Source of the DNA: Phallusia mammillata
Taxonomy: Eukaryota
DNA length: 64,000 nt
Reading direction: 5' to 3'
Assembly (NCBI GenBank): GCA_965637545.1
Contig: OZ281494.1
Span: 2,170,001 to 2,234,000 of the forward strand
Every line of letters begins with the position of its first letter. Position 1 is the stretch's first letter. The notes under the pieces were generated by a model, which was not told the origin of the DNA, did not search any database, and saw only the letters and a program-made list of their open reading frames with translations. Made by a program: the position numbers and the translations under genes. Of this stretch, positions 6,301 through 64,000 are shown piece by piece.

Positions 6301-7351
6301 CCTCACTCCAAGTGCGGTGTATGAAGCAGGTTTTAACACTTCCATGTACGACAATACCCTGCGTTGTTTCCTCGACCATCAATCCCATCTCTTCTACTGG
6401 TCGGTGATTGGTCCGATCTGTCTCTGCATTCTCATCAACCTTCTCATTCTCGGCCACGTGGTCGTCTTTATTTCCCGCCTAAACGCCAACCAACCGCGAC
6501 GAGGCCGCGTCCGTCGCCCAAACGCGCATGAGAAAATCACAAGGAAGGTCAAGATTCTTGTGGTGGGCGACATCGCAAAGAAGTTGCTGCTCCTCACTCC
6601 TGTCATGGGATTTCCACTGGTGCTGGGAATATTTGTAGGTAAGGATCTTTCTGTCACTGCTGCGCGCTACTGACGAGTTCCAGTCCCTATATGCTTAACA
6701 ATAAAACAGGATGAGACCATAGTGGGCACATCTAAGGATTCTTCCGAAAGATTAAGTGTATGCATAATCACCTAAAAACACACAAATTGGTGTACGGCCA
6801 CAGCGTGCACATCTCTTGTTACCCACAGTCGTCCTTCGTGTACTGAGAGTGTTCGTGTGTGTGCTCAAACACATGAAAAACTTTGCTGGACATAAACTGG
6901 TGTGTGGCCACAGCGCGCACATCTAATATTGCTCACAGTGGTCCTTAGGGCACTAAGGGAGCTTGCGTGTATGTCCAGATACATGAAAAACTTTGCTCAT
7001 AAACTGGTGTAAATAGCAGCGTGGTTATTTAATGTTACTCTGGTGGTTCGCAGTGTACTCAGTGCGCCTATGTGTGTGTCCAGATCCCACAAGTCAAGTT
7101 TTTATTGGTTGGCGGTCATTAACTTTTTGCCTCACCAGCAATTTGCCCCCAAATTCTCAAAAAATCGTTTCCATCCTTTTGTTGTTGCAGGAATAGGTTC
7201 AACTGAGAGCAACGATTTCTTCATGTACATCAATGTGATAGTGAACGGATTGCAAGGTTTATTTATCTTCATCATCTACTGTGTGATGCAAGAAGAAGTG
7301 AGAGAAGCCGTGAAGAGAGCTTGGTCGAGGTTTCAGTGCGGATATTGCTAG
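3334..7351 (+). CDS. Adhesion GPCR with N-terminal SUEL/Gal-lectin-like domain, GAIN/GPS and 7TM (666 aa, 8 exons)
   Basis: Exons 3334-3397, 3522-3581, 3640-3736, 4177-4349, 4658-5355, 5547-5778, 6123-6638, 7191-7351. All introns are GT-AG, phases match, total 2001 nt. Signal peptide MTSIYSTITLWVFFLLANVIQ. Lectin-like ...RTCRKKAECEIP...KHYMLITFKC. GPS CVFID...NGC...CACNHTTIFSVLL. Family-B/adhesion 7TM motifs FWMLVEG, GWGIP, IGPI and NGLQGLFIF. Confidence 0.9.
5014..5067 (+). repeat. Coding 9-bp tandem repeat (TCGGAAGAN x6) encoding SEE/SED in the adhesion GPCR GAIN region
   Basis: Six consecutive units tcggaagaa x3, tcggaagag, tcggaagat x2, read directly from the sequence. Confidence 0.95.
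6784..7090. repeat. Intronic minisatellite, about 108-bp unit x ~3
   Basis: Units start AAA(T/C)TGGTGT at 6784, 6894 and 7001. They share CCACAGCG.GCACATCT and ACATGAAAAACTTTGCT blocks. The repeat lies in intron 7 of the adhesion GPCR. Confidence 0.75.
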
Positions 7352-8475: not shown

Positions 8476-8663
8476 TCAGGTAGTAACCATTTCTGTACTG
8501 GTCCGCACCTCAGAAACAAATCGAATTTTTTTGCATTTATCCACTGCGCTGTCAATTACAGAAGAATAAAGCAAGGGATTGAGGGCGCTGTTGATTGGAA
8601 GCAAAACCGCAGCTGCAAGCACATAAACGATATCAGACAATACTACACCACCAAGCGACAAAA
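8476..8663 (-). pseudogene. 3' fragment (TM7 + C-tail) of the LDLa-GPCR family, inverted and 36 kb from the array
   Basis: Encodes LSLGGVVLSDIVYVLAAAVLLPINSALNPLLYSSVIDSAVDKCKK, identical over this stretch to the C-terminus of the 44068-47505 gene. Confidence 0.92.
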
Positions 8664-9694
8664 CAATTGCTTTAAAAATGTAAAGGGGCTGATGGGAGGT
8701 ACCGCGTAAAAAAAATCCGATTTGATGTAGAAGGTTTTTTGTAGTCTCTAAGAATAAAACCATACAGAGACTGCATGGACGATGAATGTAAAACATCCAG
8801 AAACTCGACATCTCCTTCATCTTTTGAAAAATTCCTAAACGTCAGGCGAAGCCCAAACTTCACTGCATTGTTTAGTGCAACCTCGATGCATCTGTTTACC
8901 GCTGGTCCAGTTGCGATCCATACGATGTCGTCTATAAATCGTTTGATGATCTCGCATTTTTTAAGTGTTTTTGCTATCGGTTTCAAGACAAAGTGCAAAG
9001 CTATGTTTGCTAAAGAGACAGAGTGATTATCTCCGGCAACAATACCTTCGGTTTGTTGATAATAATCCTCACCATACTTAGTTGTAACACTTTTTATAGT
9101 TACCATGACCAATTCCACCCAATGTTTTCTTCCCTCAGCATTAAACTTCGTGTGTTCTTGTAGCGCTGTACCAAGCGCTTTTTTTATTGAACCCCTGGGC
9201 AGATTTGGATACAGGGCAACTATATATGCAGCTGTAATGCAGAGGCGTCCCCTGAGCATTTGTGCTTTGTGGACGTTTTCTCGCTTCCACTTTTTTACCT
9301 CCTCCACATAGTGCATACTATCACGATAGAATTCGTCAATGCCCGACTGGCAGTATTTGATTGCCACAGGATGCAATATACGTTCAATAAGTGCCGTCAT
9401 ACGCGAAGTTGTGATGTGCCAGCAGCTTGAAAGAGTCTCACAGGAATGTCGCGTATGTTGATAACATTCAGTTCTTCCTCCATCAATTTATGGGTTTTAA
9501 AAAGTGGATAAGCGTATGCCGGGCTACTATTTTCAAAGTTTTTTGCCGTCGGTCCGGAAACTCGGTGGAACCTGTTTCCCGTCACCTTGGAGCGTAATAG
9601 TAGGTGTTCCGATATCACCGATGTGTGGTATAGTGCCTTGACGATTTTTTCACATTTCGGTCTGGTTAACTTACATTGTTTTTCAAATGTCTTT
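8664..9694 (-). mobile_element. Degenerate Penelope-like retroelement reverse transcriptase fragment
   Basis: Motifs AYPLFKTHK..IPVR, ALYPNLP, YYQQTEGIVAG..SVSLAN, RFIDD, FLDV, YKKP and SHQP..KAI. Frameshifts near 9400 and about 8730. The first catalytic-region Asp is replaced by Tyr (YIVALY). No GIY-YIG endonuclease remains. Confidence 0.85.
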
Positions 9695-22379: not shown

Positions 22380-24947
22380 TCTTGTGCCAGCATTGATGAA
22401 TATACAATTGTAAACGCAAAATGCCTAAAATTAATACTAGATAATCGTAATTGTGGTGAATGTGGAGAATAAAAAAATTTTGCAGTCATGGTGAGACGTG
22501 AGACGAATCAAAAGTTATAGCCTCATAACTGCTTGGTGGCACTCGTAAGTCACGTTACAAAAGTACATCGGCCAATGTGCCACATTTTGTATGTGACATA
22601 AAGTTTAAATCAAAATTAGTTGGTTTAAATCTAACATGAAGTTGACAACAAAAAAGTCAGCCTATGTCCAACTTCAGATAATGATTGTTAGTAGGCTTAA
22701 AGTGACTCGGATATGAGATTGCATCGTTGCACTTAAACACGTTCATGACAGCCAAAGAAAAGGTCTAAATGAAAGCTATGCGACCTAAATGAGGGCATTA
22801 TTTAAATCAATACAATTTTCAGTGTTAGTTTACTGCAAAGTTTAACCGTAAAATGTATAACCGTGAATCCCTTGGTTCACACAATAGGGGCGTCAATCAT
22901 TTCGCTGAAACAACATGAGCTTAAAACAACGCTACGTACTAAGATAGACGTAGATTGGTTTATACCGTTGCATTATTACAAAAACATCAAAAATGGTAAA
23001 AAAAACAATGGTCTTTAAATTGGACTCAATGCAAAACTGTTGTGTGACTTTTTCCATTTTGTCAGTCAAATCGTGTTTAAACTTTTTAACTGTGTTTCCG
23101 AGGGAACAATGTGTTGAAATGCCGTTATCCGGATCCAGACAAACACAGCATGGGAAAACAACATCTTGTCGATTTGAACCCTGTACACTGTAGTGTGCGC
23201 GATCGTGATGGGTGTATGTTAATGTTTGCTAATGAGTCTCAAGGTTAACCGCCTCACCACAAATTAAACACATACCACCGTTCCTATCCTACCAAGCTCC
23301 TGGGTTGCCACGATCGTGGTATCTCCACACGGGTCTCTTGTACTTCAGTTCGTTTGTTTATTACTTCTTTTAAAAAATACGACACGCTAATGTGTAGCAG
23401 AATTTCAACAGAAGAAAAGCGAACTACAACAAAAAGGGCTGAATTGAACCAGTGCAGTTTTCTATATACTCGTGATAAAAGCATTAAATTGTGCACATGT
23501 ACTCGTGCGATTGGTTTATGCACAATTCCTGCTCAAAGCAGCTTCTAATCACAGCACAGTACAAAGCACATTGTTAAAGCATGTTAAAGCTCCTGAACAC
23601 CAGATGATAAAGTCACATTAACATCGTAATTAACTGTGACAGGAAATTTTAGCACATTTTATGGCATGATTTCACAACACAATTGAATTAGGTTGCTACA
23701 CATTTAGTCTTTCTCGCAGTTGATGAGCATGTCAAAACGAGCTGTTTTGCTGAACAACTATTGCAATATTTCTATATGTTATTATTGCAATCGCTAAAAC
23801 AGTTTGATCACGTTGTAAACGTTATTGATGGCGACTAACTAGGTCTAACGTTCAGACAAACTGTTCTTGTTTCCCGGACGCAACTTGGTAGTTTATAACA
23901 CAACTCCCATGACGTTCCAATTAATAAACTATGTGGTAATTGCGCTTTTTATCTTTTAATGCAGGCGTATTCTTTTCTCTATCTCTATATTTTAAGTGAC
24001 AAATTAGTAGAAACTTACTGCAATTGTCGTGATAAATAGATTTGCATATTACTAGGAAATCGTCATTATTGTTGACCAAAAAAATTTTCAGAAATTTAAT
24101 TTAAATCTTATCTTCAACAACTTCACAGTGACACAAAATTGCTTAACTAAATTTTGGTCTACAATATTGTAACATCATTGTTAAAGGAAGTAAAGATGAA
24201 TCGTCATGTCAAGTGTCCAATGCTTTTTTATTGTTCGAAGCGCCAGGACAGAAAGACATGTCGCTTTTTACATCTTTTTGTTACACCAATGTCAATAATT
24301 TGTTTTGTCAGGTAAAATTTCTTTGATAAATTTTAAATGCTTTTCTGTTTGGTAAAAGTCCCAAATTAATACATTTTAAGTGACGGTATGTTTAGGAATT
24401 AGTACTGCCACATAAACAGATCATGGGAAAACAACATATTGTCGGCTTGAACCCTGCACACAATGATATCATTTGTTAACATTGTTCATGGCGACACATT
24501 GGTGGTCACTTGTACTCTAGCTGCTGTTGTTTTTCTCACATAGCGTATTACGTCGTCTGGGTATGTTGTTCCAATAAACTTTGTATCACACGAAGTCTGG
24601 AAATGTCGACAATTTGTGGACTATGATAACTTTGTAAACATAATTCATGGCGACATACTGGTTGTCACTTCTTTTTAAGCTGCTGTTGTTTTTCCCACAT
24701 GGTTTGTCACATACACTTTAGTCTGTTATTTTAAAACCGACTGGAACAGTTCTCACACAATGTGTAGGGAATATAAGACAAGTCAGGACTGCCTTCAAGC
24801 ACATTTACATATCAGAGGCCGGAAAGAACATTTCAACCATAGTTCTGTGAAATTTGTAAAGTTGATAAGTAATACTGGTTGATCTGTTTCTGAAAATAGA
24901 AAATATAAACAGAGAATTTCGTAACATAGTTTGAGTTGTCGCGCAAA

Positions 24948-25937
24948 ATGAATTTGTGGTTGATTAATCTTGTTGTATTGTTGGCATTTTTACTGCTGTC
25001 AGCTCACTCCAAACCACCTAAGGAACTTTCAGATCTATCACAAAACCAAGAAGTTCGTTGTCCAACGGTTCAATGTAAGCTTTTGACAGAGCTTGTGGAA
25101 AAAAAATCTGATAACAAATGTTGCGTTTTACAGTTGAAAGAATCATGTAATCAAATTTACAAACTTATGTTTTTAGATTGTCCTTTATCGCACTACATAT
25201 TTAAACGTGCAAGGGAACCGGAAGATTACATCACTTACAGAAGATACTTTCCCACGCTCAAAGTCGCCACCATGTGTATGTTTATCAATCTTGAAGATTT
25301 TTCGAGAATTATACCCGTGGTTAGCTACCAACACGTGAACTACTCTCACAATGAGATTACGTTGGAAGTTCGTTCATCATCAATACGTTTTTACGTTGGT
25401 GGACATTTCAACGAGTGGCCGTACGATATACTTGGGTTACTTACAGTAAGTTTACTATCAGTGGTATTTTTTCCGCATTACCTATGATCGTTTGTTTTAT
25501 TTAGTATCACATTTGTGTCATGTTTGATGGTCGAAACAAATCAAGAGGTTTGTATATAAACGGTGAATATCTTGGCAACCAAACTAAAGCAGACGTGGAG
25601 GTTATACACGGAGGGGGCGATTTTATTATGGGTCAGGATATAGATTTCCAACGTCCTGGTGGCATTTATCCCGACAGAACTTTTAAGTAAGTTAATATCT
25701 GTCTTTGGTTAATTTAGAAAGGTAAACAATACCGCATTTACTTTTCACCATAGAGGTACCAATGACAATTTCGTCATCTTTCCTCGAATTCTCAGTCAAG
25801 CTGAAGTGATACAAATGGGTTATCAGTGTCTCTGTCCAGTTGATCACATGGTGACAATGACCTTGGACAAGGTCGATTTTAATGGAGAAACCGATTACGA
25901 TACTCCGACTGGTTGTCCCACAATTGATTCAACATAA
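24948..25937 (+). CDS. Secreted pentraxin-domain protein, class B, no coiled-coil exon (B2, 253 aa)
   Basis: Exons 24948-25074, 25177-25445, 25505-25686 and 25754-25937 (762 nt, phases consistent). Signal peptide MNLWLINLVVLLAFLLLSAHS. Motifs RRYFPTLKVATMC, YHICVMFDG, GGGDFIMGQDID and GTNDNFVIFPRIL. Confidence 0.85.
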
Positions 25938-35914: not shown

Positions 35915-37680
35915 TTACTGCGAAATAATTGGACACTCATTGGAAACGATGTAGGTGGTTTCCCCAGAGAATTCGACCTTGTCCAAGGTCATGGAAATCA
36001 CGTGATCAACCGGGCATTGACACTGGAAAGCCATTCTTATGATTTCGACTTCCGTGAGAACGCGAGGATAGATGATGAAGTTTTTGTGGGTTCCCCTGTA
36101 AGTACAACAACATTTTTTTACCGAAGTATGAGTATAATAAGATGCTTATACAACTTAATAGATAAACTATAGCTCGCATAGACCAACATGGGCGCGATGT
36201 AAAGCGAGAAAAAGCAAAAGGCACAAGTGGTACGTATGGATTATTTCATTTCAATGATGTTTAAATTTTATCCAGTACATGTCTTAAATGGAAGTCAACC
36301 TTTACCGCTTTACGTAGATCTTTAACCGAAATACACGAGGGATTAAACCGTTATCATATTCCTATCACCAAGGTAAAAAGAAATAAATAGCTTGCGTTTG
36401 CTCAAAAGTACTACAAACCATTAATTAAATATTATACCTAAAACTTCGGTCTTCGATGAAGCCATCATACTTTTCGTCTTGACCAATCAAGAGGCTTCCA
36501 CCCCCTTCAACGACCGAACCGTCATACCCTTGTGTGCCAATGTCTTCTCCGTTGATATATACGCCCATAATTTTGTTCTTTGAATCAAACCATGCACAAA
36601 TGTGATACTGAAATACAAATAGAAGCGGGCTCTGTGTTCATTCTGTTGGGCTAGAACAGCGGTTCTCAAACTGGGGTCCGCAGTCCTTAGCGGTCCGCCA
36701 TGCGATTTCAAAGGGATCGCGCGGAGCTTAAAATACGTGCACAATAATATATTTAGCTTGGACCGCGTGTGTTCAAAAAATGCGAGGGAACCGTTATGAC
36801 AAAACAATAAGAAAGTTTGAGAACCGCTGGACTAGAATACATGATCTTGTTTGATTAATTTTGGTTTTTACAGTCAGCAAAATGAAACAGAATTCTCAAA
36901 GTGTAAAGTAGCTTTTTATAAGTTCATGCAACATAAGTTGTGTTATTGTTTACCTGTGTTTTACTGCAGAAAACATAATAGAAATCATTGACAGAATTTG
37001 AAACAACAAATCGTATAAACTCGCCAGGTACGATTTCAATAAGAATTGCATTTGCGGCAGTTGATGTTTTGTAACTTGCCGCTGCGGCGGCGTCCACCAG
37101 ATTCTCAAAGTAGACAAACGCACACACGGTGGCAGCCTTGAGCGTGGGAAAGTATCTCTTGTAACGGATGTAATCTTTCTGTTGGTTGTCATGTGGAAAA
37201 ATGAAATGAGTTTGGAGACAACCTACAAAGAAAGGGAAAAAATGTCTTAATATTTTGGGTTGATTTAAATTAGTTGTATCCTCACTTATATTTGACAGTT
37301 GTACAAAATGTATGGAGATGCGTATAGAACTAAATTTACTAATAAAAATTCCATCATATACAATACCATTGATATTATCGTTTCTACTCACTTTCATTCG
37401 GTGTTTGTGGTGGTATTTGCATCGCCCTCACTTGCATTTGAAGATTTTCAAACTTTTTCTCAATTCGTTGAAGTTTATCTGTTTGCATACAAATTGTTGT
37501 AAACTTAAATTTGCTGTTTCAATAAACAGTATAAATATTTGTGATACCTGCATAACATGAATTGACTTCGCATGTCGTGTTGTCCGTAATCTTTGGCACA
37601 CTTGTGTTTCTTCCCGTTACATCATCTGAATTAGCCAAAGCCACCAAAATCAGGAATATTTGATACGTTTCAAATACCAT
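35915..37680 (-). CDS. Secreted pentraxin-domain protein, class B, with coiled-coil exon (B4, 279 aa)
   Basis: Exons 37680-37548, 37478-37392, 37222-36954, 36607-36438 and 36095-35915 (840 nt, GT-AG, phases consistent). Motifs KRYFPTLKAATVC, YHICAWFDS, GGSLLIGQDEK and GTHKNFIIYPRVL. Confidence 0.88.
36657..36829. mobile_element. hAT-type MITE, 173 bp, in B4 intron 3
   Basis: Perfect 16-bp TIRs CAGCGGTTCTCAAACT / AGTTTGAGAACCGCTG. TSD GGCTAGAA / GACTAGAA (7/8). Confidence 0.9.
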
Positions 37681-44067: not shown

Positions 44068-47000
44068 ATGGTCAGGTTTGTGCTGCTGTTAACTCTTATA
44101 ATGTTAATCAACAATCTACAGTCAAACAGCTTCTTTACTTATGGTAAGCAAATTGTCGTTGACATGCAATTAAGCCTTTTCATTTTAAATTAGTAATTCT
44201 AGGCGTGTTCTGGAGCCGGTGGTAGCATAATGTGAAAACATATCATTTATATGTTCTAAGTTTAAAAAAATGCTCAATAATTCGCTGGTTTTACATTTAA
44301 GTCCAACGTTAATTCATTGCTGATATTTATTAACTACAACCATTATAATTATATTGTAAGAAAAACTTTAATGCAACCGATAATGATTTTGAAGAACTCT
44401 AAGCCTGTTCAAACCACCGCAACAAGCTGGTGTTAACCAAAAACATAAACACCGCAACTGCTGTTTTAATGCATTACTAAACATGGTTGCTTTCAATCTA
44501 AATATTATACATATGGTTTCGGGTTTATTTTTGGAACTGTGACGTTTAGTTACCTTCTTCAAGAACCGATATTTTTTGCAGAACAATGTCGATTTAAGCA
44601 GCAAAGTTGCAACGCTGGAGATTCCATGTGTGGATGCCCAGCATCAAGACCTGACAACAATTCAACTACATTTAATGCATCTCAATGTGCGCCAGTCGGC
44701 GGATGCGAAGACAATAACGTAACTGCGACTTGCAGTGCAAACCAATACAAATGCGGCTGTTTTCCAAGAGACAGTAATTGCATGCATGGGCTGGGATGTT
44801 ATGAAAAGACACAAATGTGTGATGGCATCTACGACTGTTTAGATGGAACAGACGAAGTGAATTGTACTTGCCAAGTTGATAAGTTTCAATGTGCATGTTA
44901 TGAAAGTAACACATGTGTTGGATTGCGTGGCTGTCTGACAAGCACGAAGGTATGCAATAGGATTGATGATTGTAAAGATTACAGCGATGAAGTCAACTGC
45001 CCTTGCTTGGAAGATGAATTTAAGTGCAAGTCTAAACAGTGCATCCCTTTATCTTTAAAATGCAACGGAAATTTTGACTGCGATGACAGCAGCGACGAAA
45101 CGAATTGCACATGTAGTGGTGATCAAGTAATGTGCGGGTGCATCTATGGTGAAAGGATTTGCCCACCAACTGGACAATGCATACCTAACACATCAGTGGC
45201 CGATGGTACATCAAACTGCATGGACGTAAGCGATGAACCTTGCGACTATTTTTCCCGAACGTCTGAATTAAATTGTTATTACAGTTTAATAAACTGCACC
45301 AGTAAAATATCCATGAAGAGATTTATGAAGCACCATGCAAACAATTTTACACATTGCTTTCAGCATCACCGAGCGTGTGAAGGGCACAAAGACAAAATGT
45401 GTACTGATGACTACTGGATTTGCAACAAGCCTCAATGCCATTCAAAGAATTCACCATCCACACCTTCCGTATATTATCAGGATTATAACAACAACATTCA
45501 ATTTGCATTGTTTGCTTTTTGTCCTTTTGTAACTCCAGCCGATTACTACATTCATGCATACCCGAGTTTTAAATGTCTTGGATATTGGTTAACATTTCCA
45601 TGTAGCTTGCCTCAAATCAATCTCTACGATCAAGATGCCCAGTGCGCTGACAAATCTGATCTGTGTTTCGTCAACGGAGAATTCCGATGCTTCCTTTGCT
45701 TGGACAAGAGACTGGTGATCTCAAAGAATCAGGTGTGCGACGGCGTGATTGATTGCTACGACCTGTCAGATGAATGCTTGTGCGAGAATCAGAGCGTGTG
45801 CAAAGCTTTGCTTGGCGATTCCCAGTCAACTTGTCCACCAGGTCATCTGCACTGCTACAACCAAACAGATTGTCTTCCAATAGACTCTGTCATGTGCAAC
45901 CAATCTGTGAACTGCTTGAACGCGTATAACATTAAATATTGCTATCCACAAATTAACTTGACTTTATGCACTGAGAGGGGGACATTTGTTGTAGCATGCG
46001 ATGAAAGACCTGAATGTTTAAATGCCACCGATGAATGCCGTAATTGCCCAAATAAGCCAGCGTTTTGCAACGACATCCAATTTATGTCAGATGCGGCTCA
46101 GTATTGGGTGTGTGATGGAATACAGCGTGGCTCCCACAACGAATCAGTTTGTCCGAATCGCTATGTTTGCAGCAGTGGCACTTTCATGAGCATTGACGTC
46201 ATGAAAGTTTGCGATGGAAACTACGACTGTGACGATAAATCGGATGAGGCAATGGTCCGTTGTAAGGACAAGAGATTTTATTGTCTCAATGGGAATCCAC
46301 TGTCAGTGCCCATTGCTGACAAAGAAGACGGAATCAAAGACTGCTCGGACGGCAGTGACGAATGCCCACATGTCAGCTCTCGTAACACAGTTTTCTCCAA
46401 TCAGAAAGAAATGATTGCCAACCCTATTTTAAACGCGTTTATATGGATCATGGGTATCCTTGCATTGATTGGGAATTTCATAGTAGCTACAACCGTCTTC
46501 AGAAAGTCATATATGAACCGGATAACAGATAGTTGTGTAAATAAATGCACTCAAATATTCATTGTCAATCTATCAGTTTCCGACATGTTAATGGGAATCT
46601 ATTTACTTGCTGTTGCTGTCAAAAGTGTCCATTTCTCTGGGAATTATTGTTATTTCGATTCTGAGTGGCGTTCAAGCACACAATGCTCAATCCTAGGTGC
46701 ACTGTGTGTCATTTCATCACAGACTTCGGCATTAACCATGGCACTAATATCAGTCTATAGACTTGTGTCTGTGTGGAAACCATTTTACACTGTGTCACTT
46801 ACACCGATGTGGATTTTGTTGGCCTGTTTTGTTGCTTGGTGTGTTGCTTTTGTCTTTGCCATCATTCCCACAGTTGATTTTGCATCTGGTTACTTTGTAA
46901 CAACAATCTGGTTTCCTAATTTCGTTCACAAACGTGATTTTGTTTCTTTTGAAGCTGCAATGCTTTTGGCACAACGTATATCACCCACCAACACCACCGT

Positions 47001-47505
47001 GCTATCTTGGCATGACGCTAAACGAGTCATCGACATTAACATGTCAGGGCAATCCATCAAAGGAGAGTTTGGTTACTACGCCAAAACAAGCGTGTGTTTG
47101 CCGAGACTCTTTGCTTCAGAAAGCCATTCAGCTTGGGGATATTCACTGTTTATTATCACAGTCGATTTTGTCTTGTTTATTTTCATGGTAGCCGCTTATG
47201 TCCTTATTTATCGAAGGAGCAATCGCATGGCCAAGTCAAGAAACAATGATACCAGCTCCAAAATGCAAAAGCGAATATCCAGATTGCTTTTGACCGACTT
47301 CTGTTGCTGGATTCCGATTTGCATGCTTAGTTTTTTGTCGCTTGGTGGTGTAGTATTGTCGGACATCGTATATGTGCTTGCAGCTGCGGTGTTGCTTCCG
47401 ATCAACAGCGCCCTCAATCCCTTGCTTTATTCATCTGTGATTGACAGCGCAGTAGATAAATGTAAGAAATTACGTGTGGCTTCTGTGGGCCGAAATTCTG
47501 GTTAA
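44068..47505 (+). CDS. Multi-LDLa rhodopsin-family GPCR, GRL101/RXFP-like 7TM, no LRRs (G1, 999 aa, 2 exons)
   Basis: Exon 1 44068-44143 is the signal peptide MVRFVLLLTLIMLINNLQS. Exon 2 is 44582-47505; total 3000 nt. There are eight LDLa acidic D/N-x-[S/T]-D-E motifs plus degenerate modules. LGR-type 7TM: IWIMGILALIGNF, NLSVSDMLMGIYL, TDFCCWIPIC and LPINSALNPLLY. Confidence 0.93.
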
Positions 47506-49369: not shown

Positions 49370-49520
49370 ATAACAAAACAGTCTTCAATGAAAGCCAATA
49401 CAAATGCGGTTGTTTTTCAAGAAACAGTAATTTCACGTATGGGCTGGGATGTTATGAAAAGGCTGCCTAGATGGAACAGACGGAGTGCGTTGTACTTGCC
49501 CAGTAAATGAGTTTCAAGGT
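49370..49520 (+). pseudogene. Decayed LDLa-GPCR exon-2 5' remnant
   Basis: Matches G1 about 44740-44890 (CCAATACAAATGCGG, GGGCTGGGATGTTATGAAAAG, GATGGAACAGACG) with deletions. Confidence 0.75.
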
Positions 49521-52023: not shown

Positions 52024-54621
52024 ATGGTTAGGTTTGTGCTGATGTTATCTGTAATAGTGTCAATCCACAATCTACAGTCAGAGGGACTCGAATTTGAGTG
52101 CAAGTCAAAACAGAACGAATTTGAGTGCAAGTCAAAACAATGCATCCCTTTATCTTCAAAGTGCAATGGGAAGTTCGACTGCGATGACACCAGCGACGAA
52201 ACCAACTGCACATGTAGTGGTGATAAAGTAATGTGCGGATGCATCTATGCCGATCAGATCTGTCCGACTACTGGGCAATGCATACCTAACACAACAGTGG
52301 CCGATGGTAAGCCGAACTGCATTGATCAAAGCGATGAACCATGTCAGACGTTGAGCCAACAATACAGCATATACTGCCAACATCGTTTATTTAACTGCAC
52401 CAGTAAAAAATCGATGGAGAGATTTCTGAAGTATCAAGGACACAATTCTGCGAACTGTGTTCAGCATCACAGCCCGTGTAAAGGGCACAAGGATAAAATG
52501 TGCACAGATGATTACTGGATTTGCAACATTCCAAAATGCCAAACACAGAATAAATCACCATCGAAACAGAATACACCGCCGGTTTACTATCAAGATCTTT
52601 ACAACAACATGAAGTTTGCTTTGTTTTCTTTTTGTCCTTTTATAACACCAGCTGATTACCACATCAACACATACCCGAGTTTCAAATGTCTTGGATACTG
52701 GTTAACATTTCCATGTAGCTTGCCTCAGATTAATCTCTATCGACCAAGACGCCCAGTGCGCTGACAAATCCGATCTGTGTTTCGTCAACCGAGAATTTCG
52801 ATGCTTCCTTTGCCTGGACAAGAGACTGGTTATCTCAAAGAATCAGGTGTGCGATGGTGTGATTGATTGCTACGACCTGTCAGATGAATGCTTGTGCGAG
52901 AATCAGACGGTGTGCAAAGCCGTGCTTGGCGATTCTCAGTCAACTTGTCCACCAGGTCATATGCACTGCTACAACCAAACAGATTGCCTTCCAATAGATT
53001 CTGTCATGTGCAACCAATCTGTGAACTGCTTGCACGCGCATAACATTAACTATTGCTACCCGCAAATTAACTTGACCTTATGCAGCAGAAGCCCTATATA
53101 TGGTGTAGCATGCGATGGAAGACCTGAATGTTCCGATGTCAGTGATGAGTGTTCTAACTGCCCAAATCCACCAGCGTTTTGCTATGACAGCCAATTTATG
53201 TCAGATGCCACAAGTATTGGATGTGTGATGGAATAAAGCGTGGCAGTTCCTACAACGAATCACTTTGTCCCAAACGCTATATTTGTAACAGTGGCACTTT
53301 TACAAGCATTGACGTCAGGAAAGTTTGCGATGGAAACTACGACTGTGACGATAAATCGGATGAGGCAAAGGATCGTTGTAAGAACAAGAGATTTTATTGT
53401 CTAAGTGGTAATCCACTCTCAGTGCCCATTGCAGAAAAGGAAGACGGAATCAAAGACTGCTCGGACGGCAGTGACGAATGTCCACCAGTGAGCTCACGTA
53501 ACACTGTTTTCTCCAATCAGAAGGAAATGATCGCCAACCCGATTTTGAATGCGTTGATATGGATAATGGGTATCGTTGCATTGATTGGGAATTTCATAGT
53601 TGCTGCAACCACTGTTAAAAAGACATATCTAAACTGGAATACCAACAATCGTGTAAATACATGCACTCAAATATTCATTGTTAACCTATCAGTTTCCGAC
53701 ATGTTAATGGGAATCTATTTACTTGCTGTTGCAGTCAAAAGTGCTCAGTATTCAGGAAGGTATTGTTATTTTGATTCTGAATGGCGATCGAGCACACAAT
53801 GCTCGATCCTAGGCGCACTATGTGTCATTTCATCGCAGACTTCAGCTTTAACCATGGCACTGATATCTGCTTATAGACTTGTGTCTGTCTACAAACCATT
53901 TCTCACTATATCACTAGGGCCTAAGTGGATTGTTTTGGGGTGTTTCGTTACTTGGTGTGTTTCTTTGTTCATTGCCATCATTCCCACAATTGATTTTGCA
54001 TCCGGTTACTTTGTAACAACAATCTGGTTTCCCAATTTCGTTTACAAACGCGATTTTTTTTCTTTTGGGGCTGCAATGCTTTTGGCACAACGCATGTCAC
54101 CTACCAACAGCACCGTGTTATCATGGCACGACGCTAAACGAGTCATCGACATTAACATGTCTGGTCAATTAGTCAAAGAAGAGTTTGGTTACTACGCCAA
54201 AACAAGCGTGTGTTTGCCAAGACTATTTGCTTCGGAAAGTCATACAGCCTGGGGATACTCACTGTTTATAATCACAGTCGATTTTGTCTTTTTTATTTTC
54301 ATGGTAATCGCTTATGTCCTCATTTATCGACGCAGCAATCACATGGCTGAGGCAAGAAACAATGATATCTGCGCCAAAATGCAGAAGCGAATATTAAGAT
54401 TGCTTCTGACCGATTTCTGTTGCTGGATTCCGATTTGCATACTTGGTTATCTGTCGCTGGGTGGCGTACCGTTGTCTGATATCGTTTATGTGCTTGCAGC
54501 TGCGGTTTTGCTTCCGATCAACAGCGCCCTCAACCCGTTGCTTTATTCAACTGTGATTGACAACGCACTAGACAAATGTAAGAAATGTCGCGTGGCATCT
54601 GCTGAACTCATTATTATGTGA
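52024..54621 (+). pseudogene. LDLa-GPCR copy G2: intronless through an internal deletion, with two frameshifts
   Basis: The signal peptide is fused in frame to the third LDLa module. A +1 base near 52740 and a -1 base near 53210 are seen relative to G1, and the shifted frame stops at 52764. The 7TM region 53221-54621 is open. Confidence 0.88.
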
Positions 54622-56519: not shown

Positions 56520-56670
56520 AACAAAACAGTCTTCAATGAAAGCCAATACCTTTGCGGTTGTTTTTCAAACGACAGTAATTGCACGTATGGTCTGGAATGT
56601 TATTAAAAGACTGCTTAAAAGGAACAGACGAAGTGCGTTGTATTTGCCCAGTAAATAAATTTCAAGATAA
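56520..56670 (+). pseudogene. Second copy of the decayed LDLa remnant
   Basis: Near-identical to 49370-49520 in the same flanking context. Confidence 0.72.
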
Positions 56671-58056: not shown

Positions 58057-61000
58057 ATGGTTAGGTTTGTGGTTCTGTCATCTCTTATAATGTTAATCAA
58101 CAGTCTACTGACAGACGGGCTCTTCACTTATGGTAAGCAAACCGTTTCTTTAAATTAGTAGTCCTAAGTCTTTGTCAGTGCCTTTGTAGAAACTTAGTTT
58201 GGGCTTTAATAGGTGTGAAAGCATTAAGTAAAACTTGTCATTGGTTAAATTCCTATTTAATGCTCAAAACTCAATATTGTTTTATTTAAAGACTAAAGCT
58301 AATTAATTACTGCTATATAATAACTAATTTATCATTAGTGTCACAGCGAAATTTAGGATACATTGCAAAAAAAAACGATAATGAATTATGAAAAAGTTTA
58401 AGCCTGTTCAAAGCACCTCAAAATGCTGATGTAAACAAAAACATCTTAACTGTTTTAATGCGTAACATTGCGTTTTACGTTCATTCATTCTCTGGAAGTG
58501 TAATTTTTGATCACGCTTATTGTAGTAATCGATATTTTTTACAGAACAATGTCGGTTTAAGCAGCAAAGTTGCAACGTTGGACAGTTCGTGTGTGGATGC
58601 CCAGCATCAAGGCCGGATAACAATTTAATAACATTTAGGGCTTCTCAATGTCTCCCTATCGAATTATGTACTATATACAACAAAACGGTCTGCACTGAGA
58701 CCCAATACCAATGCAGTTGTTTTCCAAGAGACAGTAAATGCACATATGGGTTGGGATGTTATGAAAAGACACAAATATGTGATGGCATCTACGACTGCAT
58801 AGATGGAACAGACGAAGAAAATTGTACTTGCCTATTTTATGAGTTTCAATGTGCATGTTATGAAAGTTCCTCATGTGTTGGTTTGCGTGGCTGTCTATCA
58901 ATTTTCAAGTTGTGTGATAGGATTAATGATTGTAAAGAAAACAGCGATGAAAACATCTGCCCTTGCTGGGAAGATCAATTTGAGTGCAATTCTAAACAGT
59001 GCATCCCTTTATCTTGGAAATGCAACGGAAAATCTGACTGCGATGACAGCAGCGACGAAACCAATTCCACATGTAGTGGTGATCAAGTAATGTGCGGATG
59101 CATCTATGAAAAACATATCTGTCCGACTACTGGGAAATGCATACCTGACACATCTGTGGCCGATGGTAAGGCGGACTGCATTGACCATAGCGATGAACCT
59201 TGTGACTATTTTTCTAAAACTTTACGGCTATTGTGTTATTACCATCTCATAAACTGCACCAACAAAAAATCCATGAGATTTTTGAAGTACCAAGCAAATA
59301 ATTCTGCAAATTGTATTCAGCATCACAGACCGTGTAAAGGGCACAAGGAAAAAATGTGTCCGGATGAATACTGGATTTGCAACAAGCCTCAATGCGAAGG
59401 AGAGAATACAACCCCATCGACACCTCCGGTTTACTATCAGGATCACAATAACAACATCAAATTTGCTTTGTTCGCTTTTTGTCCTTTTATAACTCCAGCT
59501 GATTACCACATACACGTATACCCGAGTTTCAAATGTCTTGGATATTGGTTAACATTTCCATGCAGCTTGCCTCAGATCAATCTTTACGACCATTCTCGAC
59601 AGTGCGCTGACAAATCCGATCTGTGTTTCGTCAACGGAGAATTCCGATGCTTCCTTTGCTTGGACAAGAGACTGGTTATCTCAAGGAAGCAGGTGTGCGA
59701 TGGCGTGATTGATTGCTACGACCTGTCAGATGAATGCTTGTGCGAGAATCAGACGGTGTGCAAAGCCGTCCTTGGCGATTCTCAATCAACTTGTCCACCA
59801 GGTCATATGCACTGCTACAACCAAACAGATTGCCTTCCAATAGATTTTGTGTTGTGCAATGGCTTTGTAAAATGCATGAACGCGAGTAACACCCAATATT
59901 GCTATCAACAAATTGACTTGATTTTATGCACCGAAAGGAATGCATATGGTGTAGCGTGCGATGGAAGACCTGAATGTCTAAATTCCACTGATGAGTGTCG
60001 TAACTGCCCAAATCCACAAGCGTTTTGCAACGACATCCAATTTATGGCAAATGCCATAGAACTTTGGGTGTGCGATGGAATACAGCCTGGATCCCATAAC
60101 GAATCACTTTGTCCCAAACGCTATATATGCAGCAGTGGCACTTTTATCAGCATTGACGTCAAGAAACTTTGCGATGGAAACTACGACTGTGACGATAAAT
60201 CGGATCAGTCAATGGTCTGTTGTAAGGACAAGCGGTTTTATTGTCTTGATGGGAATCCATTATCAGTCCCCATTTCTGACAAGGAAGACGGAATCAACGA
60301 CTGCTCGGACGGCAGTGACGAATGCCCACCTGTCAGCTCTCGTAACACTGTTTTCTCCAATCAGAAACAAATGATTGCCAACCCTATTTTGAACGCGTTT
60401 GTATGGATAATGGGTATCATTGCATTGATCGGGAATTTCATTGTAGCTGCAACCACTGGTAAAAAGACATATCTAAAGTGGAATACTGACAATTGTGTAA
60501 ACAAATGCACTTAAATATTCATTGTTAACCTGTCAGTTTCCGACATGTTAATGGGAATCTATTTACTTGCTGTTGCAGCTAACCTTGCCCAGTTTTCAGG
60601 AAGTTATTGTTACTTTGATTCTGAATGGCGTTCAAGCACACAATGCCCGATCCTAGGTGCACTGTGTGTCATTTTATCTCAATCTTCGGCTTTAACCATG
60701 ACATTGATATCTGCTTATAGACTTGTATCTGTCTACAAACTATTTCTCACTATATTACTGGGACCTAAATGGACTATTTTGGGGTGTTTTGTTACTTGGT
60801 GTGTTTCTTTGTTCATTGCCATTATTCCAACCCTTAATTTTTCCTCTGGTTAGTTTGTGACGACAATCTGGTTTCCTAATTTCGTTCACAAACGTGATTT
60901 TGTTTCTTTTGAAGCTGCAATGGTTTTGGCACAACGTATATCACCCAGCAACAGCACCGTGTTATCATGGCACGAGGCTAAACGAGTTACAGACATTAAC

Positions 61001-61465
61001 ATGTCAGGCCAATCAATCAAAGGAGAGTTTGGTTACTACGCCAAAACAAGCGTGTGTTTGCCAAGACTTTTTGCTTCAAGTGGCCATGCTGCTTGGGGAT
61101 ATTCACTGTTTATCATCACAGTCGATTTTGTCTTGTTTATTTTCATGGTAATCGCCTATGTTCTCATTTATCGACGCAGCAATCGCATGGCGGAGGCAAA
61201 GAGCAATGATACGAGCGCCAAAATGCAAAAGCGAATATCCAGATTGCTTCTAACCGATTTCTGTTGCTGGATTCTGATTTGCATCCTCAGTTCTTTATCG
61301 CTTAGTGGTGTAGTAATGTCAGACATCGTATATGTGCTTGCAGCTGCGGTTTTGCTTCCTATCAACAGCGCCCGCAACCCGTTGCTTTATTCAACTGTGA
61401 TTGACAACGCACTAGACAAATGTAAGAAATGTCGCGTGGCTTCTGCTGAATTCGTTATTATGTGA
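58057..61465 (+). pseudogene. LDLa-GPCR copy G3, full-length with two nonsense codons
   Basis: Exons 58057-58132 and 58545-61465 stay in one frame. TAA at 60512-60514 (CAA in G1) and TAG at 60851-60853 (TAC in G1). TM7 reads NSARNP instead of NSALNP. Confidence 0.9.
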
Positions 61466-63539
61466 CTCATCGTGAATTTCTTTAACAGTATCCTACTGGT
61501 GTCTAAAAAACACCGATATATTGAATATACCCTTTCTATTTTGCACTTAATCAACCTGTGTTCTATTTGTGTAAACGTTTTCCTTTTGCTTTAACGTGAT
61601 GCGCTTGTACCTGATGTTTGTGCTACGGTTTTGTACAGGTTTGATTTGTTCAAAATCAATACATATCTTGGATCATCAAAAAAAAGTTTACCAAAACTAT
61701 TTGATCCCAGATTGTTGAATACTAATAAAACGTGATTGTTTTCCATCAGTCAGACTCAACGCTTTTCAACGATCTGTTCGCGGTTCATGGGTCAAACGCC
61801 TGCCTCGCGGGTTCATGGGTCAAAACAAATTAGAAAAATGCGCCGCAACAATCTGTTGCCTGCTTAGTGGGGTTTTAAAATGTTAAGGAACATTCTAAAC
61901 TTGCCTTAAAATGTAATAAAAAATCTAAGATCTTAAGCAAACAATATGTGATTTTAAAAGATAACATTTTGTGACTGACAAGTTATTTTGGTGCAACGTT
62001 AAATGTTTGTATCACAAAAAAGAGTTTCAAGATTGTAACAAACTAGTGTCCCAAGATTTGTTACACCCTCAAAACCCCGCTGGGCCGGCAAAAATCGTTG
62101 CATCACGTTGCGCTTAATTGTGCTGGCGACAAGAAAACATGACCTGTTGTTGGCTCTCAAATTGGAACATAAACTAGATTTTGGCAGGTCCACTAGCAAA
62201 ATAGAAACATGGTAATAGTGTTAGTGTTGCAGCTGCATAATACATTTAATAGGAAGCCATTGACTTCAACAAACCACCTTAACCGCAACTGAGTAAACCC
62301 GCTTTCCCTCGCCGGTAGTTATTAATCATTACTGATCAGCTGTTGATGTTGAGACAGGATGTACGTGCAATAGCTGCTTTCTCTCATGTATCAAGCTAAG
62401 GTATAAATAGTTAAAATTCTTTGGGCATACATGACTTTGATGCTGTTTAAAACACTTAGCAAGCAGCGTCACTAAAAAGTGTGCTGTCACTTACCTTCCT
62501 ACTAATTCCCGGCGGCGGGCAAGTCCATATGCTAGTTTTTTTGCGCAGAAATTTATGTGATCTATGATACAATAAACGCATTTGATCTGGATTCAGGTCA
62601 CATTATTCATACTTTAATTTTGTGCCGTCGCTTCTAAACCTTGCAAAATTGAAAAATAACTTTGCAAATTACTTTTGTTGACGTTTTCACACAACACAAG
62701 CGTTTGCTGCCTTACCTCGGCATCTTTGCCACGAACATCAAGAACAATATTTTGTCTGGTACTCAGTTGTGCAGGAATGTAAAAAACAAACAAAAGAGTT
62801 CTTTGTGACACAACGTATCTGCCAACTGTTCAATAACAGAAAATAAAACCGTATTGGAAGGGTGAACTATTTTGATTACTTGTCGCTTGGTTGCTCTACT
62901 TTGGACTCTTATTAACAGCTTTCTTCTAATCGAGGCAGTTATTTGTGGAAACGCGATAAGAAGGCAGGATATTTGTGATGTCTCTTCCCAACTTTCTACC
63001 CGTATTTAGTGGGAAATTGCCGAATCTGTCATTCAGAGGTAAAACCGTGGTTGCTGTGATGTATAAAGAAAAATTCTGACCAAAAGCTTTAAACCTGTCT
63101 GCTAAACTAACAGTAGAGGAATATAATTGTGATTGTAAATGCGGTATTCAATCAGGAAAAGCCCATCTTCAAGACTAATATACTTTTTACGTGATCTAGA
63201 CAAAACTAGTGTTTTCTGAAAGAGCACACAAGACAGTTGGAAGTATAAGTAACTTGCGAACATACAGGAGCACTGATAAACCCGAGAAAAGATTAAACGC
63301 AAATTACGGGATTTTATCAGAGTTTTTCGACAAAAATCATTTCGTTGGCAATAATTGATCAATTAAACAACTTTACCTGCTATGTGTTGCAAATTGGTTA
63401 GAGTATTCTCCACAAGCTTGATTGATTTGACGGCAATAACATTTGGTCAGCGACTTCCTCCCGCTCGTGCCAAGCATTAGATGGTTTAGTATATTGTTGT
63501 GGCTCACAATCGGGACAGTTTGTAAAGTTTGTAAAGCGA

Positions 63540-64000
63540 CTTCGGCTTTAACCATGACATTGATATCTGCTTATAGACTTGTATCTGTCTACAAACTATT
63601 TCTCACTATATTACTGGGGCCTAAATGGACTATTTTGGGGTGTTTTGTTACTTGGTGTGTTTCTTTGTTCATTGCCATTATTCCAATCCTTAATTTTTCC
63701 TCTGGTTAGTTTGTGACAACAATCTGGTTTCCTAATTTCGTTCACAAACGTGATTTTGTTTCTTTTGAAGCTGCAATGCTTTTGGCACAACAAATGTCAC
63801 CCACCAACAGCACCGTGTTATCATGACACGACGCTAAACGAGTCATCGACATCAACATGTCCGTGCAATTAATCAAAGGAGAGTTTGGTTACTACGCCAA
63901 AACCAGCGTGTGTTTGCCAAGACTGTTTTCTTCAAGTGGCAATTCAGCTTGGGGATACTCACTGTTTGTAATCACAGTAGATTTTGTCTTGTTTATTTTA
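63540..64000 (+). pseudogene. 5'-truncated LDLa-GPCR 7TM fragment G4 (runs off the window)
   Basis: Homology begins abruptly at TTCGGCTTTAACCATG (TM3). It shares G3's TAG (63707-63709) and G3-specific residues (YKLFLTILLGPKWTIL), and has an extra TGA near 63824. Confidence 0.88.

Follow-up and report, generated by a model that had tools for sequence, protein, structure and literature searches.

An LRR-less LDLRR-GPCR gene with about 11 LDLa-derived modules and a clade-specific ECL2 insertion in the tunicate Phallusia mammillata

We report that a two-exon gene on the forward strand of a 64,000-nucleotide stretch of Phallusia mammillata DNA (contig OZ281494.1; the whole stretch is referred to as "the window") encodes a relaxin-receptor-like G protein-coupled receptor (GPCR) in which an array of LDLa modules runs into the seven-helix (7TM) domain, with no leucine-rich repeats (LRRs) detected in between. 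Taken whole, i.e. the observed architecture together with the mechanism proposed below, an intact and selectively maintained orphan LDLRR-GPCR gene is the best explanation, with a probability of roughly 0.85. The single gene is ordinary, and the interest lies in the orphan family to which it belongs, which is still unexplained. To our knowledge, the LDLRR-GPCRs are the only known natural case of an RXFP-type seven-helix core that works without an LRR domain.

The gene starts with the ATG at 44068, has a GT donor directly 3' of position 44143 and an AG acceptor at 44580-44581, and ends with the stop codon at 47503-47505; joining 44068-44143 to 44582-47505 gives a product of 999 amino acids (aa) in which the only stop is the terminal one. 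The span 44068-47505 in the original prediction proved exact when the open reading frame and the splice sites were checked. The parts of the gene are:

44068-44143, forward strand: exon 1, start codon and signal peptide (25 codons and base 1 of codon 26; hydrophobic MVRFVLLLTLIML, GT donor at 44144-44145).
44144-44581, forward strand: intron of 438 nt, GT..AG, phase 1, predicted splice (GTAAGC donor, TTTTTTGCAG acceptor).
44582-47505, forward strand: exon 2, the entire mature receptor (residues 26-999) and the stop codon, as a single open frame with Pfam LDLa and 7tm_1 matches.

The exon-2 product was used as the query in the public-database and family searches, and the joined 999-aa model for residue numbering and for comparison with copies in the same genome. 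The host genome is that of a tunicate, and the P. mammillata protein P0128 is 100% identical to it over residues 77-1371. Two presumed P. mammillata RNA runs gave no RNA coverage of the locus, and none of the sequencing runs recorded as RNA contained it; in the two runs that did contain the locus the contig runs across the intron, and these are therefore genomic DNA.

The ectodomain is composed of about 11 LDLa-derived modules, of which roughly five are well preserved and the others weak or decayed. Pfam matched Ldl_recept_a to six stretches of the exon-2 product (E 1.2e-26), and the piecewise scan, together with the AlphaFold model of the ectodomain, gave the following layout:

44584-44730, forward strand: N-terminal Cys-rich stretch, residues 27-75 (no Pfam match; pLDDT <50 in the ectodomain model).
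44731-45246, forward strand: LDLa modules M1-M4, residues 76-247 (Pfam E 3.7e-7, 2.6e-7, 4.4e-13 and 2e-4; pLDDT mostly 64-82).
45247-45660, forward strand: the supposed inserted domain, residues 248-385 (no Pfam match; in order, a small beta-rich and Cys-rich part, a decayed LDLa and a conserved LDLa-variant module).
45661-46149, forward strand: M5, M6, M7 and M7b, weak or decayed LDLa, residues 386-548 (Pfam E 1.7e-4 for M5 and 6.9e-4 for M6-M7, two stretches).
46150-46365, forward strand: membrane-proximal LDLa pair M8-M9, residues 549-620 (Pfam E 2.9e-12, two stretches; pLDDT 91-96 in the model that includes the hinge and 7TM).

Scanned module by module, M1, M2, M3 and M8 each gave a strong individual match, and M9 is the second matched stretch of the M8-M9 fragment, for which the E-value applies to the pair and M9 has no score of its own. 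The matches of M4, M5 and the M6-M7 fragment were weak (E 2e-4 to 7e-4, under the Pfam cut-off), M6 and M7 being scanned jointly as one 89-aa piece. Residues 27-75, 248-385 and 516-548 had no match in the piecewise Pfam scan; M7b, at the last of these, keeps a CDG core. Nine modules are thus detectable piecewise, and with this tally about 10 LDLa-type modules, as originally predicted, is a fair number. The acidic DCxDxSDE cluster is retained in five modules, and in several modules cysteines or this cluster are missing. The ectodomain model resembles beads on a string, and its top 50 Foldseek matches are mostly LDLa arrays (megalin/LRP2, VLDLR, LDLR, ApoER2 and CD320).

Residues 248-385 had been taken for an inserted domain. 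As a foreign module this reading did not survive: in two distant relatives (P0006 and P0196) ordinary LDLa repeats are the aligned counterpart of its C-terminal half, and judging by these alignments decayed LDLa makes up at least part of the "inserted domain". Its last 33 residues constitute a conserved LDLa-variant module (FKCLGYW..QCADKSDLC). A foreign origin of the 138-aa insert is countered by the alignment, as decayed LDLa, with the distant relatives and by its language-model look-alikes, which are LDLa proteins only (score 0.92, a lead only). AlphaFold reached moderate confidence in the first ~65 residues alone (beta hairpins and a helix). The region is present at about 19 loci of the subfamily (20 matched places, two of which are one locus).

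No LRR family was detected by Pfam on the exon-2 product at E 0.1 or piecewise at E 10, the LxxLxLxxN motif had zero matches in the full 999-aa protein, and no LRR protein was among the top 50 Foldseek matches of the ectodomain model. The positive controls behaved as such, i.e. oyster GRL101 gave seven LxxLxLxxN matches and an LRR-bearing LGR from the same genome gave LRR_8 at E 1.6e-16. The predicted lack of LxxLxLxxN repeats is hence borne out by motif scan, Pfam and fold search; the Pfam outcome was the expected one (LDLa and 7tm_1, no LRR), and the predicted structure of the ectodomain was that of an LDLa array.

The last LDLa module (..KDCSDGSDEC, residues 611-620) passes into PHVSSRNTVFSNQKEMIANPIL and then into TM1 from about residue 641; the protein sequence agrees here with the direct passage from module to hinge to TM1 that was originally described. 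The membrane-proximal features are:

46366-46425, forward strand: hinge peptide of 20 aa, residues 621-640 (..VFSNQKEMIANPIL), homologous to the type C LGR hinge.
46426-47460, forward strand: seven-helix domain, LGR-type, residues 641-985 (Pfam 7tm_1, E 2.3e-17).
46897-47070, forward strand: ECL2 insertion of ~57 aa, residues ~798-855, specific to the LRR-less clade (sequence alignment, AlphaFold).

The PDB sequence search of the receptor gave RXFP1 as the best match among solved structures (E 3.4e-23; RXFP1/RXFP2, structure 7TMW), with the LDLa module type, CWIP and NPxxY in common. LGR-family receptors were at the top of the fold search of the 7TM, and in the VIA alignment the Z values were 32 for FSHR, 31.5 for LGR4 and 28.7 for RXFP1 (28% identity). 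The AlphaFold model of the 7TM had a pLDDT of 93.7 and a pTM of 0.90, and pLDDT was 86-97 for M8-M9, the hinge and the ECL2 insertion. The predicted architecture (many LDLa, no LRR and a relaxin-receptor-like 7TM) is accordingly what Pfam, the solved-structure match to RXFP1 and the LGR fold matches show.

In the hinge, FSNQKEMI is aligned with ISSLEDLL in the hinges of RXFP1 and GRL101, such that I396, S397, L402 and L403 of RXFP1 correspond to F630, S631, M636 and I637; F630, S631 and I637 are near-invariant among 128 sequences. These four RXFP1 residues are functionally important according to Erlandson et al., and ECL2 residues likewise have reported roles. In ECL2, YYG..VCFP of RXFP1 corresponds to YYA..VCLP, with Y556, Y557, C563, F564 and P565 matched by Y857, Y858, C864, L865 and P866. 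Since R867 stands for L566 of RXFP1, only part of the agonist motif in ECL2 is retained. Upstream within ECL2 sits the ~57-aa insertion, which is present in 35/35 LRR-less receptors vs 0/24 LRR-bearing ones and which AlphaFold models as three short strands and two helices (pLDDT 90-96). D2.50, R3.50, CWIP and NPLLY are present in the receptor, and R3.50, D2.50, CWxP and NPxxY are kept across the 128 sequences. Position 3.49, the acidic residue of E/DRY, is Tyr here and the acidic residue is lost clade-wide in LRR-less receptors; this could mean altered or constitutive coupling. The receptor thus differs from RXFP1, whose ectodomain combines a single LDLa with a 32-residue linker and LRRs (relaxin binding, autoinhibition), in having no LRR, about 11 LDLa with the last one abutting the hinge, the ECL2 insertion, Tyr at 3.49 and Arg at the position of L566.

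There is no novelty at the family level. A cluster of LRR-less LDLa-GPCRs, "LDLRR-GPCR", was described in Ciona by Kamesh, Aradhyam & Manoj (2008, BMC Evol Biol 8:129; PMC2396169), with 14 confirmed members (14-30 reported) and ESTs mainly from blood and haemocytes, and the window gene joins this orphan family; beyond that paper we found nothing in the later literature on LDLRR-GPCRs. The expansions of multi-LDLa GPCRs in Ciona that the original prediction mentioned match this 2008 description. Placement in a characterised LRR-less clade with a known ligand would have spoken against the original prediction; the clade was indeed on record (Ciona, 2008) but is orphan, so that only half of this applies. 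Relatives of the exon-2 product are LDLa and 7tm_1 proteins of Ciona, Clavelina, Styela and Phallusia (E down to 1e-234), and many more stand in ENA and JGI records (P0139, P0095, P0108 and others). The 7TM domains of 59 sequences (35 LRR-less and 24 LRR-bearing of RXFP/GRL101 type) were used for an ML tree, and in this unrooted tree, which includes no type A or B LGR outgroup, one branch (support 100/100, length 1.19) parts all LRR-less from all LRR-bearing receptors. The window gene falls inside a Phallusia clade (100/100), which together with two JGI proteins is sister to a Ciona clade (98/90); it therefore groups with the Ciona LDLa-GPCRs and apart from LRR-bearing RXFP/GRL101.

Like the window gene, the Ciona LDLRR-GPCRs have tandem LDLa modules (1 to 10 in Ciona) leading straight into an INSL3/relaxin-receptor-like 7TM without LRR, and are orphans of an expansion described as tunicate-specific. 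The window gene differs in belonging to a Phallusia-specific subfamily of about 17 genes, which is 35-45% identical to the Ciona proteins and carries the decayed LDLa modules at residues 248-385, and in that Phallusia has at least 110 loci, many more than the 14-30 of the Ciona reports. The best-scoring LRR-bearing match to the 7TM was oyster GRL101 (E 1.9e-74). Receptors of GRL101 type share LDLa on a type C LGR 7TM in some of the listed relatives, and Lymnaea GRL101 is described in the literature as having many LDLa modules; they differ in keeping the LRR block and E/DRY, in having no ECL2 insertion and in being separated from the window gene by the 100/100 branch.

Among 527 candidates in the P. 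mammillata genome, at least 110 LRR-less LDLa-GPCR 7TM loci were scored; they form tandem arrays in which pseudogenes occur. The window gene is under purifying selection: compared with 12 paralogues, dN/dS was 0.27 overall and 0.16-0.32 across regions, with 0.18 for M8-M9 and the hinge, 0.16 for ECL2 and 0.21 for the 7TM. The dN values were 0.13-0.20 in the ectodomain vs 0.02-0.06 in the proximal unit. The ECL2 insertion had the lowest dN of any region (0.023), and its low dS (0.14 vs ~0.40 elsewhere) suggests that gene conversion adds to the apparent conservation of ECL2.

In the mechanism that we propose, the LDLa array would capture a large protein or lipoprotein ligand in a calcium-dependent manner, as LDLR and LRP modules do. 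The signal would be routed through a conserved unit made up of M8-M9, hinge and ECL2. This unit would control an internal agonist like that of RXFP1, namely GYY..SVC-L-P in ECL2, anchored by M636 and I637 of the hinge, upon which the 7TM would activate a G protein, assumed to be Gs as in RXFP1. In RXFP1, activation needs the LDLa module and the linker, and in the human receptor the LRR domain has the double task of binding the hormone and keeping the receptor inactive. Since LRR-deleted RXFP1 is constitutively active (Erlandson et al.), the likely stand-in for the LRR autoinhibitor would be the ECL2 insertion together with M8-M9; judged from AlphaFold confidence values only, M9 may contact the insertion. 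The ligand is probably not relaxin-like, as originally predicted, which is a reasonable view and the one that Kamesh et al. arrived at when they argued against a relaxin receptor and for a large protein or lipoprotein as the probable ligand. Tentatively, the LRR-less clade might be a natural counterpart of LRR-deleted RXFP1, in which the RXFP-type ECL2 agonist and hinge were kept, autoinhibition passed from the LRRs to a new ECL2 insertion acting with the last LDLa pair, and the distal LDLa modules were free to diversify into at least 110 large-protein/lipoprotein sensors. The clade-wide ECL2 insertion, the conserved activation residues of hinge and ECL2 and the constrained last two LDLa modules offer handles on how such receptors are silenced and switched, and an expansion as large as that of Phallusia gives the question of the ligands more weight.

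Several other explanations were weighed. The large number of loci in tandem arrays with pseudogenes, the higher dN of the ectodomain relative to the proximal unit and the predominance of blood and haemocyte ESTs in the Ciona family would all suit one of many diversifying surface sensors of haemocytes, of an immune or chemosensory type, which would recognise non-self or environmental molecules by means of the variable LDLa array. However, dN/dS stayed <0.4 in each ectodomain region and each pairwise comparison, hence this crude pairwise test shows no diversifying selection, and we consider such a role rather unlikely. It is improbable that the protein is mainly an endocytic or scavenger receptor with the seven-helix bundle as a membrane anchor without G-protein signalling. 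Its ectodomain is indeed like the ligand-binding arrays of LDLR, LRP and megalin (LDLR, VLDLR and LRP2 arrays being the best match to the model), and the clade-wide loss of the E/DRY acidic residue would fit; yet Pfam found only LDLa and 7tm_1, with neither EGF nor YWTD propeller, the single-pass anchor of LDLR/LRP is missing, the core 7TM motifs are kept across the 128 sequences and the 7TM is under purifying selection. We consider it very improbable that this receptor still responds to relaxin- or insulin-like peptides, bound via LDLa, hinge and extracellular loops instead of LRRs, even though no solved structure is nearer in sequence than RXFP1, the hinge and, in part, the activation core of ECL2 are retained, and RXFP1 itself requires LDLa and linker. 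The LRRs that bind relaxin in RXFP1 are missing here, a long and fully supported branch separates the clade from RXFP/GRL101-type receptors, at least 110 loci per genome are hard to square with few hormone ligands, and this genome also retains a separate LRR-bearing RXFP1-like gene at C4:25.77 Mb; the conclusion of Kamesh et al. points the same way.

It is quite improbable that birth and death within the array has left this copy recently dead or silent, with no working receptor as its product, although both other copies in the window are pseudogenes, the locus was in no RNA run and the N-terminal part of the paralogue L001 contains a stop. Against this, the frame of 999 codons is intact with canonical splice sites, dN/dS is low in each region and the family-conserved signalling motifs are all present, and a maintained LDLRR-GPCR gene remains our preferred reading. 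The other two copies are:

52024-54621, forward strand: tandem copy 2, pseudogene (85% DNA identity to 45016-47485; frame changes near 52741 and 53212).
58057-61465, forward strand: tandem copy 3, pseudogene (84% DNA identity, full length; in-frame stops in the 7TM near 60512 and 60854).

In copy 2 the signal peptide is joined to M3, because the intron and the modules up to M2 are deleted. Upstream of copy 2 as well as of copy 3 there is an exon-1 homologue.

The LDLa-GPCR gene at window 44068-47505 (+) (hereafter the window gene) is a further member of the published LDLRR-GPCR family, and the window DNA is AT-rich and eukaryotic in character (GC 34-42%). A two-exon gene is predicted, and this model reproduces the length of 999 aa and the coordinates of the original prediction:

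44068-44143 (+): exon 1, ATG and hydrophobic signal peptide, then a GTAAGC donor
between 44143 and 44582 (+): intron of 438 nt, with the GTAAGC donor and the 3' end TTTTTTGCAG
44582-47505 (+): exon 2, closing with a stop codon

Public collections were searched using exon 2 as query, and the joined model was used for numbering and for comparison with the genome's own copies. In the exon 2 product Pfam detected Ldl_recept_a over six stretches (E 1.2e-26) along with 7tm_1 (E 2.3e-17) but no LRR family, exactly the domain content anticipated. When the LDLa-derived modules (M1 to M9) were scanned piecewise, M1, M2, M3 and M8 each gave a clear match, while M4, M5 and the M6-M7 fragment (scanned as one, two stretches matched) matched weakly, under the Pfam cut-off; M9 was matched as the second stretch when M8 and M9 were scanned as one piece, the E value of 2.9e-12 applying to the two together, and residues 27-75, 248-385 and 516-548 gave no LDLa match. 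Residue 620 closes the last module (..KDCSDGSDEC), which, as originally described, runs directly into the hinge, PHVSSRNTVFSNQKEMIANPIL, and then TM1 (from about residue 641). The claim that the ectodomain lacks LxxLxLxxN repeats was borne out for the entire protein (zero motifs, vs seven in oyster GRL101).

From a 34-sequence alignment AlphaFold modelled the entire ectodomain, at low pTM, as small modules strung together. The top 50 Foldseek matches of this model include no LRR protein and are mostly megalin/LRP2, VLDLR, LDLR, ApoER2 and CD320. Pfam, motif scan and fold search all find no LRR, and the initial observation of many LDLa modules and a 7TM domain without LRRs is confirmed. An inserted domain had also been proposed. 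The 138-aa stretch in question (residues 248-385), which is found at about 19 loci of the window-gene subfamily (20 matched places), does lack an LDLa match, but an imported domain is rejected: because ordinary LDLa repeats of distant relatives align where it stands, and a conserved LDLa variant makes up its final 33 residues, it is, judged from the alignment, at least partly decayed LDLa.

The genome is assigned to Phallusia mammillata by a database protein of that species to which it is 100% identical. It has at least 110 scored 7TM matches (from 527 first-look candidates), most of them in open frames of 1,000-1,400 codons, and the window-gene subfamily comprises about 17 loci, chiefly at C1:2.137-2.298 Mb. 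Family copies and fragments in the window are:

52024..54621 (+): copy 2, a pseudogene with the intron and the modules through M2 deleted and two frame changes
58057..61465 (+): copy 3, a pseudogene with two in-frame stops in the 7TM
63538-63999 (+): a further family copy that begins here and is cut by the window end, with 85% identity to 46722-47183 in the 7TM of the window gene
49383-49461 and 56531-56611 (+): pieces of about 80 nt between the tandem copies, 80-88% identical to M1 (44729-44810), probably duplication/deletion debris
8527-8663 (-): fragment of 137 nt that matches the TM7 end of the window gene (47333-47469) at 92.7% identity
8675-9400 (-): reverse-transcriptase ORF (RVT_1, E 4e-5) adjoining the 137-nt fragment

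At 8527-9400 (-) it looks as if a retroelement captured, or went into, a fragment of the LDLa-GPCR family.

Among solved structures the 7TM sequence is closest to RXFP1 (E 3.4e-23), next to TSHR, LHCGR and FSHR, and then to LGR4. M8-M9, hinge and 7TM together were modelled very confidently (128-sequence alignment; pLDDT 93.7, pTM 0.90), and Foldseek and VIA-align ranked LGR-family receptors top for the 7TM (VIA-align Z: FSHR 32.1, LGR4 31.5, TSHR 31.1, RXFP1 28.7), the highest identity among the aligned structures being that of RXFP1 (28%). In an unrooted ML tree of 59 7TM domains, which contains no type A or B outgroup, one branch (100/100, length 1.19) parts all 35 LRR-less receptors from all 24 LRR-bearing ones (GRL101-like, RXFP-like, LGR3 and vertebrate RXFP1). 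The window gene falls on the LRR-less side, apart from the RXFP/GRL101 types with which the original prediction had suggested comparing it, inside a Phallusia clade (100/100); two JGI proteins are the sister of this clade, and a Ciona clade is the sister of both together. The branch that carries two LRR-less relatives, P0095 and P0097, is very long.

A word-indexed protein search gave 107 relatives. Those with a species name come from Ciona intestinalis, Clavelina lepadiformis, Styela clava and Phallusia mammillata, and they have LDLa and 7tm_1 without LRR at 30-48% identity. This family is the "LDLRR-GPCR" cluster described from Ciona (Kamesh et al. 2008, PMC2396169), whose 14 confirmed members have between 1 and 10 LDLa repeats, lack LRRs and resemble INSL3/relaxin receptors in their TM regions, with ESTs chiefly from blood and haemocytes. 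The Ciona multi-LDLa expansion named in the original prediction is thus on record and the family is not new; the literature library searched yielded no later paper on it. The ENA assemblies ERZ25067582 and ERZ25073835 also encode LRR-less LDLa-GPCRs, each in a single exon, and these share an insertion in ECL2 with the window gene.

This insertion of about 57 residues (residues ~798-855; three short strands and two helices in the AlphaFold prediction, pLDDT 90-96) is present in all 35 LRR-less receptors compared and in none of the 24 LRR-bearing ones. Across the LRR-less clade the acidic residue of E/DRY is substituted (Y/F/T/L-R-L/M), D2.50, R3.50, CWxP and NPxxY are retained, and the hinge immediately preceding TM1 shares its origin with the type C LGR hinge. 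Its residues F630, S631, M636 and I637 are the equivalents, in this order, of I396, S397, L402 and L403 in RXFP1, and F630, S631 and I637 are almost invariant (128-sequence alignment). The internal-agonist segment of RXFP1 ECL2, Y556 Y557 ... C563 F564 P565 L566, corresponds to Y857 Y858 ... C864 L865 P866 R867 and is partly retained, the last position being changed. In RXFP1, signalling requires F564, L566, L402 and L403, the LRRs are autoinhibitory, and the 7TM without ectodomain signals at ~70% of maximum (Erlandson et al.). What is new here is modest, namely an ECL2 insertion common to the whole clade and a partly conserved activation core of the RXFP1 type, which make the activation mechanism of the family testable.

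RNA evidence was not obtained, two presumed RNA runs of the species being without coverage, and overall dN/dS is 0.27 against 12 same-subfamily paralogues (73-84% protein identity), with 0.27-0.32 in the distal ectodomain, 0.21 in the 7TM, 0.18 in M8-M9 plus hinge and 0.16 in ECL2. In ECL2 (46876-47133) dS is about a third of that elsewhere in the gene (0.14 vs ~0.40), a sign of gene conversion in this region or of constraint on the nucleotide sequence itself; gene conversion therefore probably contributes to the ECL2 conservation.

Four rival readings are considered: the gene could be a silent copy, or its product could be a receptor of the relaxin type, one of a diversified set of sensors with an immune or chemosensory role, or a scavenger without signalling. 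For the Ciona members, lipoproteins or large protein complexes were proposed as ligands, with no functional relation to relaxin receptors (Kamesh et al. 2008), and the original interpretation of a putative non-relaxin ligand captured by the LDLa array is reasonable. Building on the architecture, kinship, selective constraint and conserved motifs demonstrated here, we infer that the array would capture a large protein or lipoprotein ligand, that M8-M9, hinge and ECL2, as a unit under constraint, may gate an RXFP1-like internal ECL2 agonist, and that the ECL2 insertion and proximal LDLa modules may have replaced the lost LRR autoinhibitor.

One LRR-bearing LGR is retained in the same genome (C4:25770886-25772472; L016:874-2460 +), a single exon of 529 aa with LRR_8 (E 1.6e-16) and 7tm_1 (E 2.9e-23). 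Among solved structures it is closest to RXFP1 (E 3.3e-49, colinear across LRRs and 7TM); unlike the LRR-less clade it has no ECL2 insertion, and its Ciona counterpart is probably the 'candidate INSL3/relaxin receptor-like' gene. Elsewhere in the window we observed:

4720-6670 (+): adhesion-type GPCR exons, one open frame with a GPS motif (E 3.2e-8) and another with 7tm_2 (E 1.5e-15)
24936-25484 (+) and 36927-37397 (-): related open frames with the common motif ..YI(T/R)Y(R/K)RYFPTLK(V/A)AT(M/V)C..

One of the two related frames matches Pentaxin weakly (E 0.006, under the cut-off), and they may be exons of oppositely oriented pentraxin-like genes.
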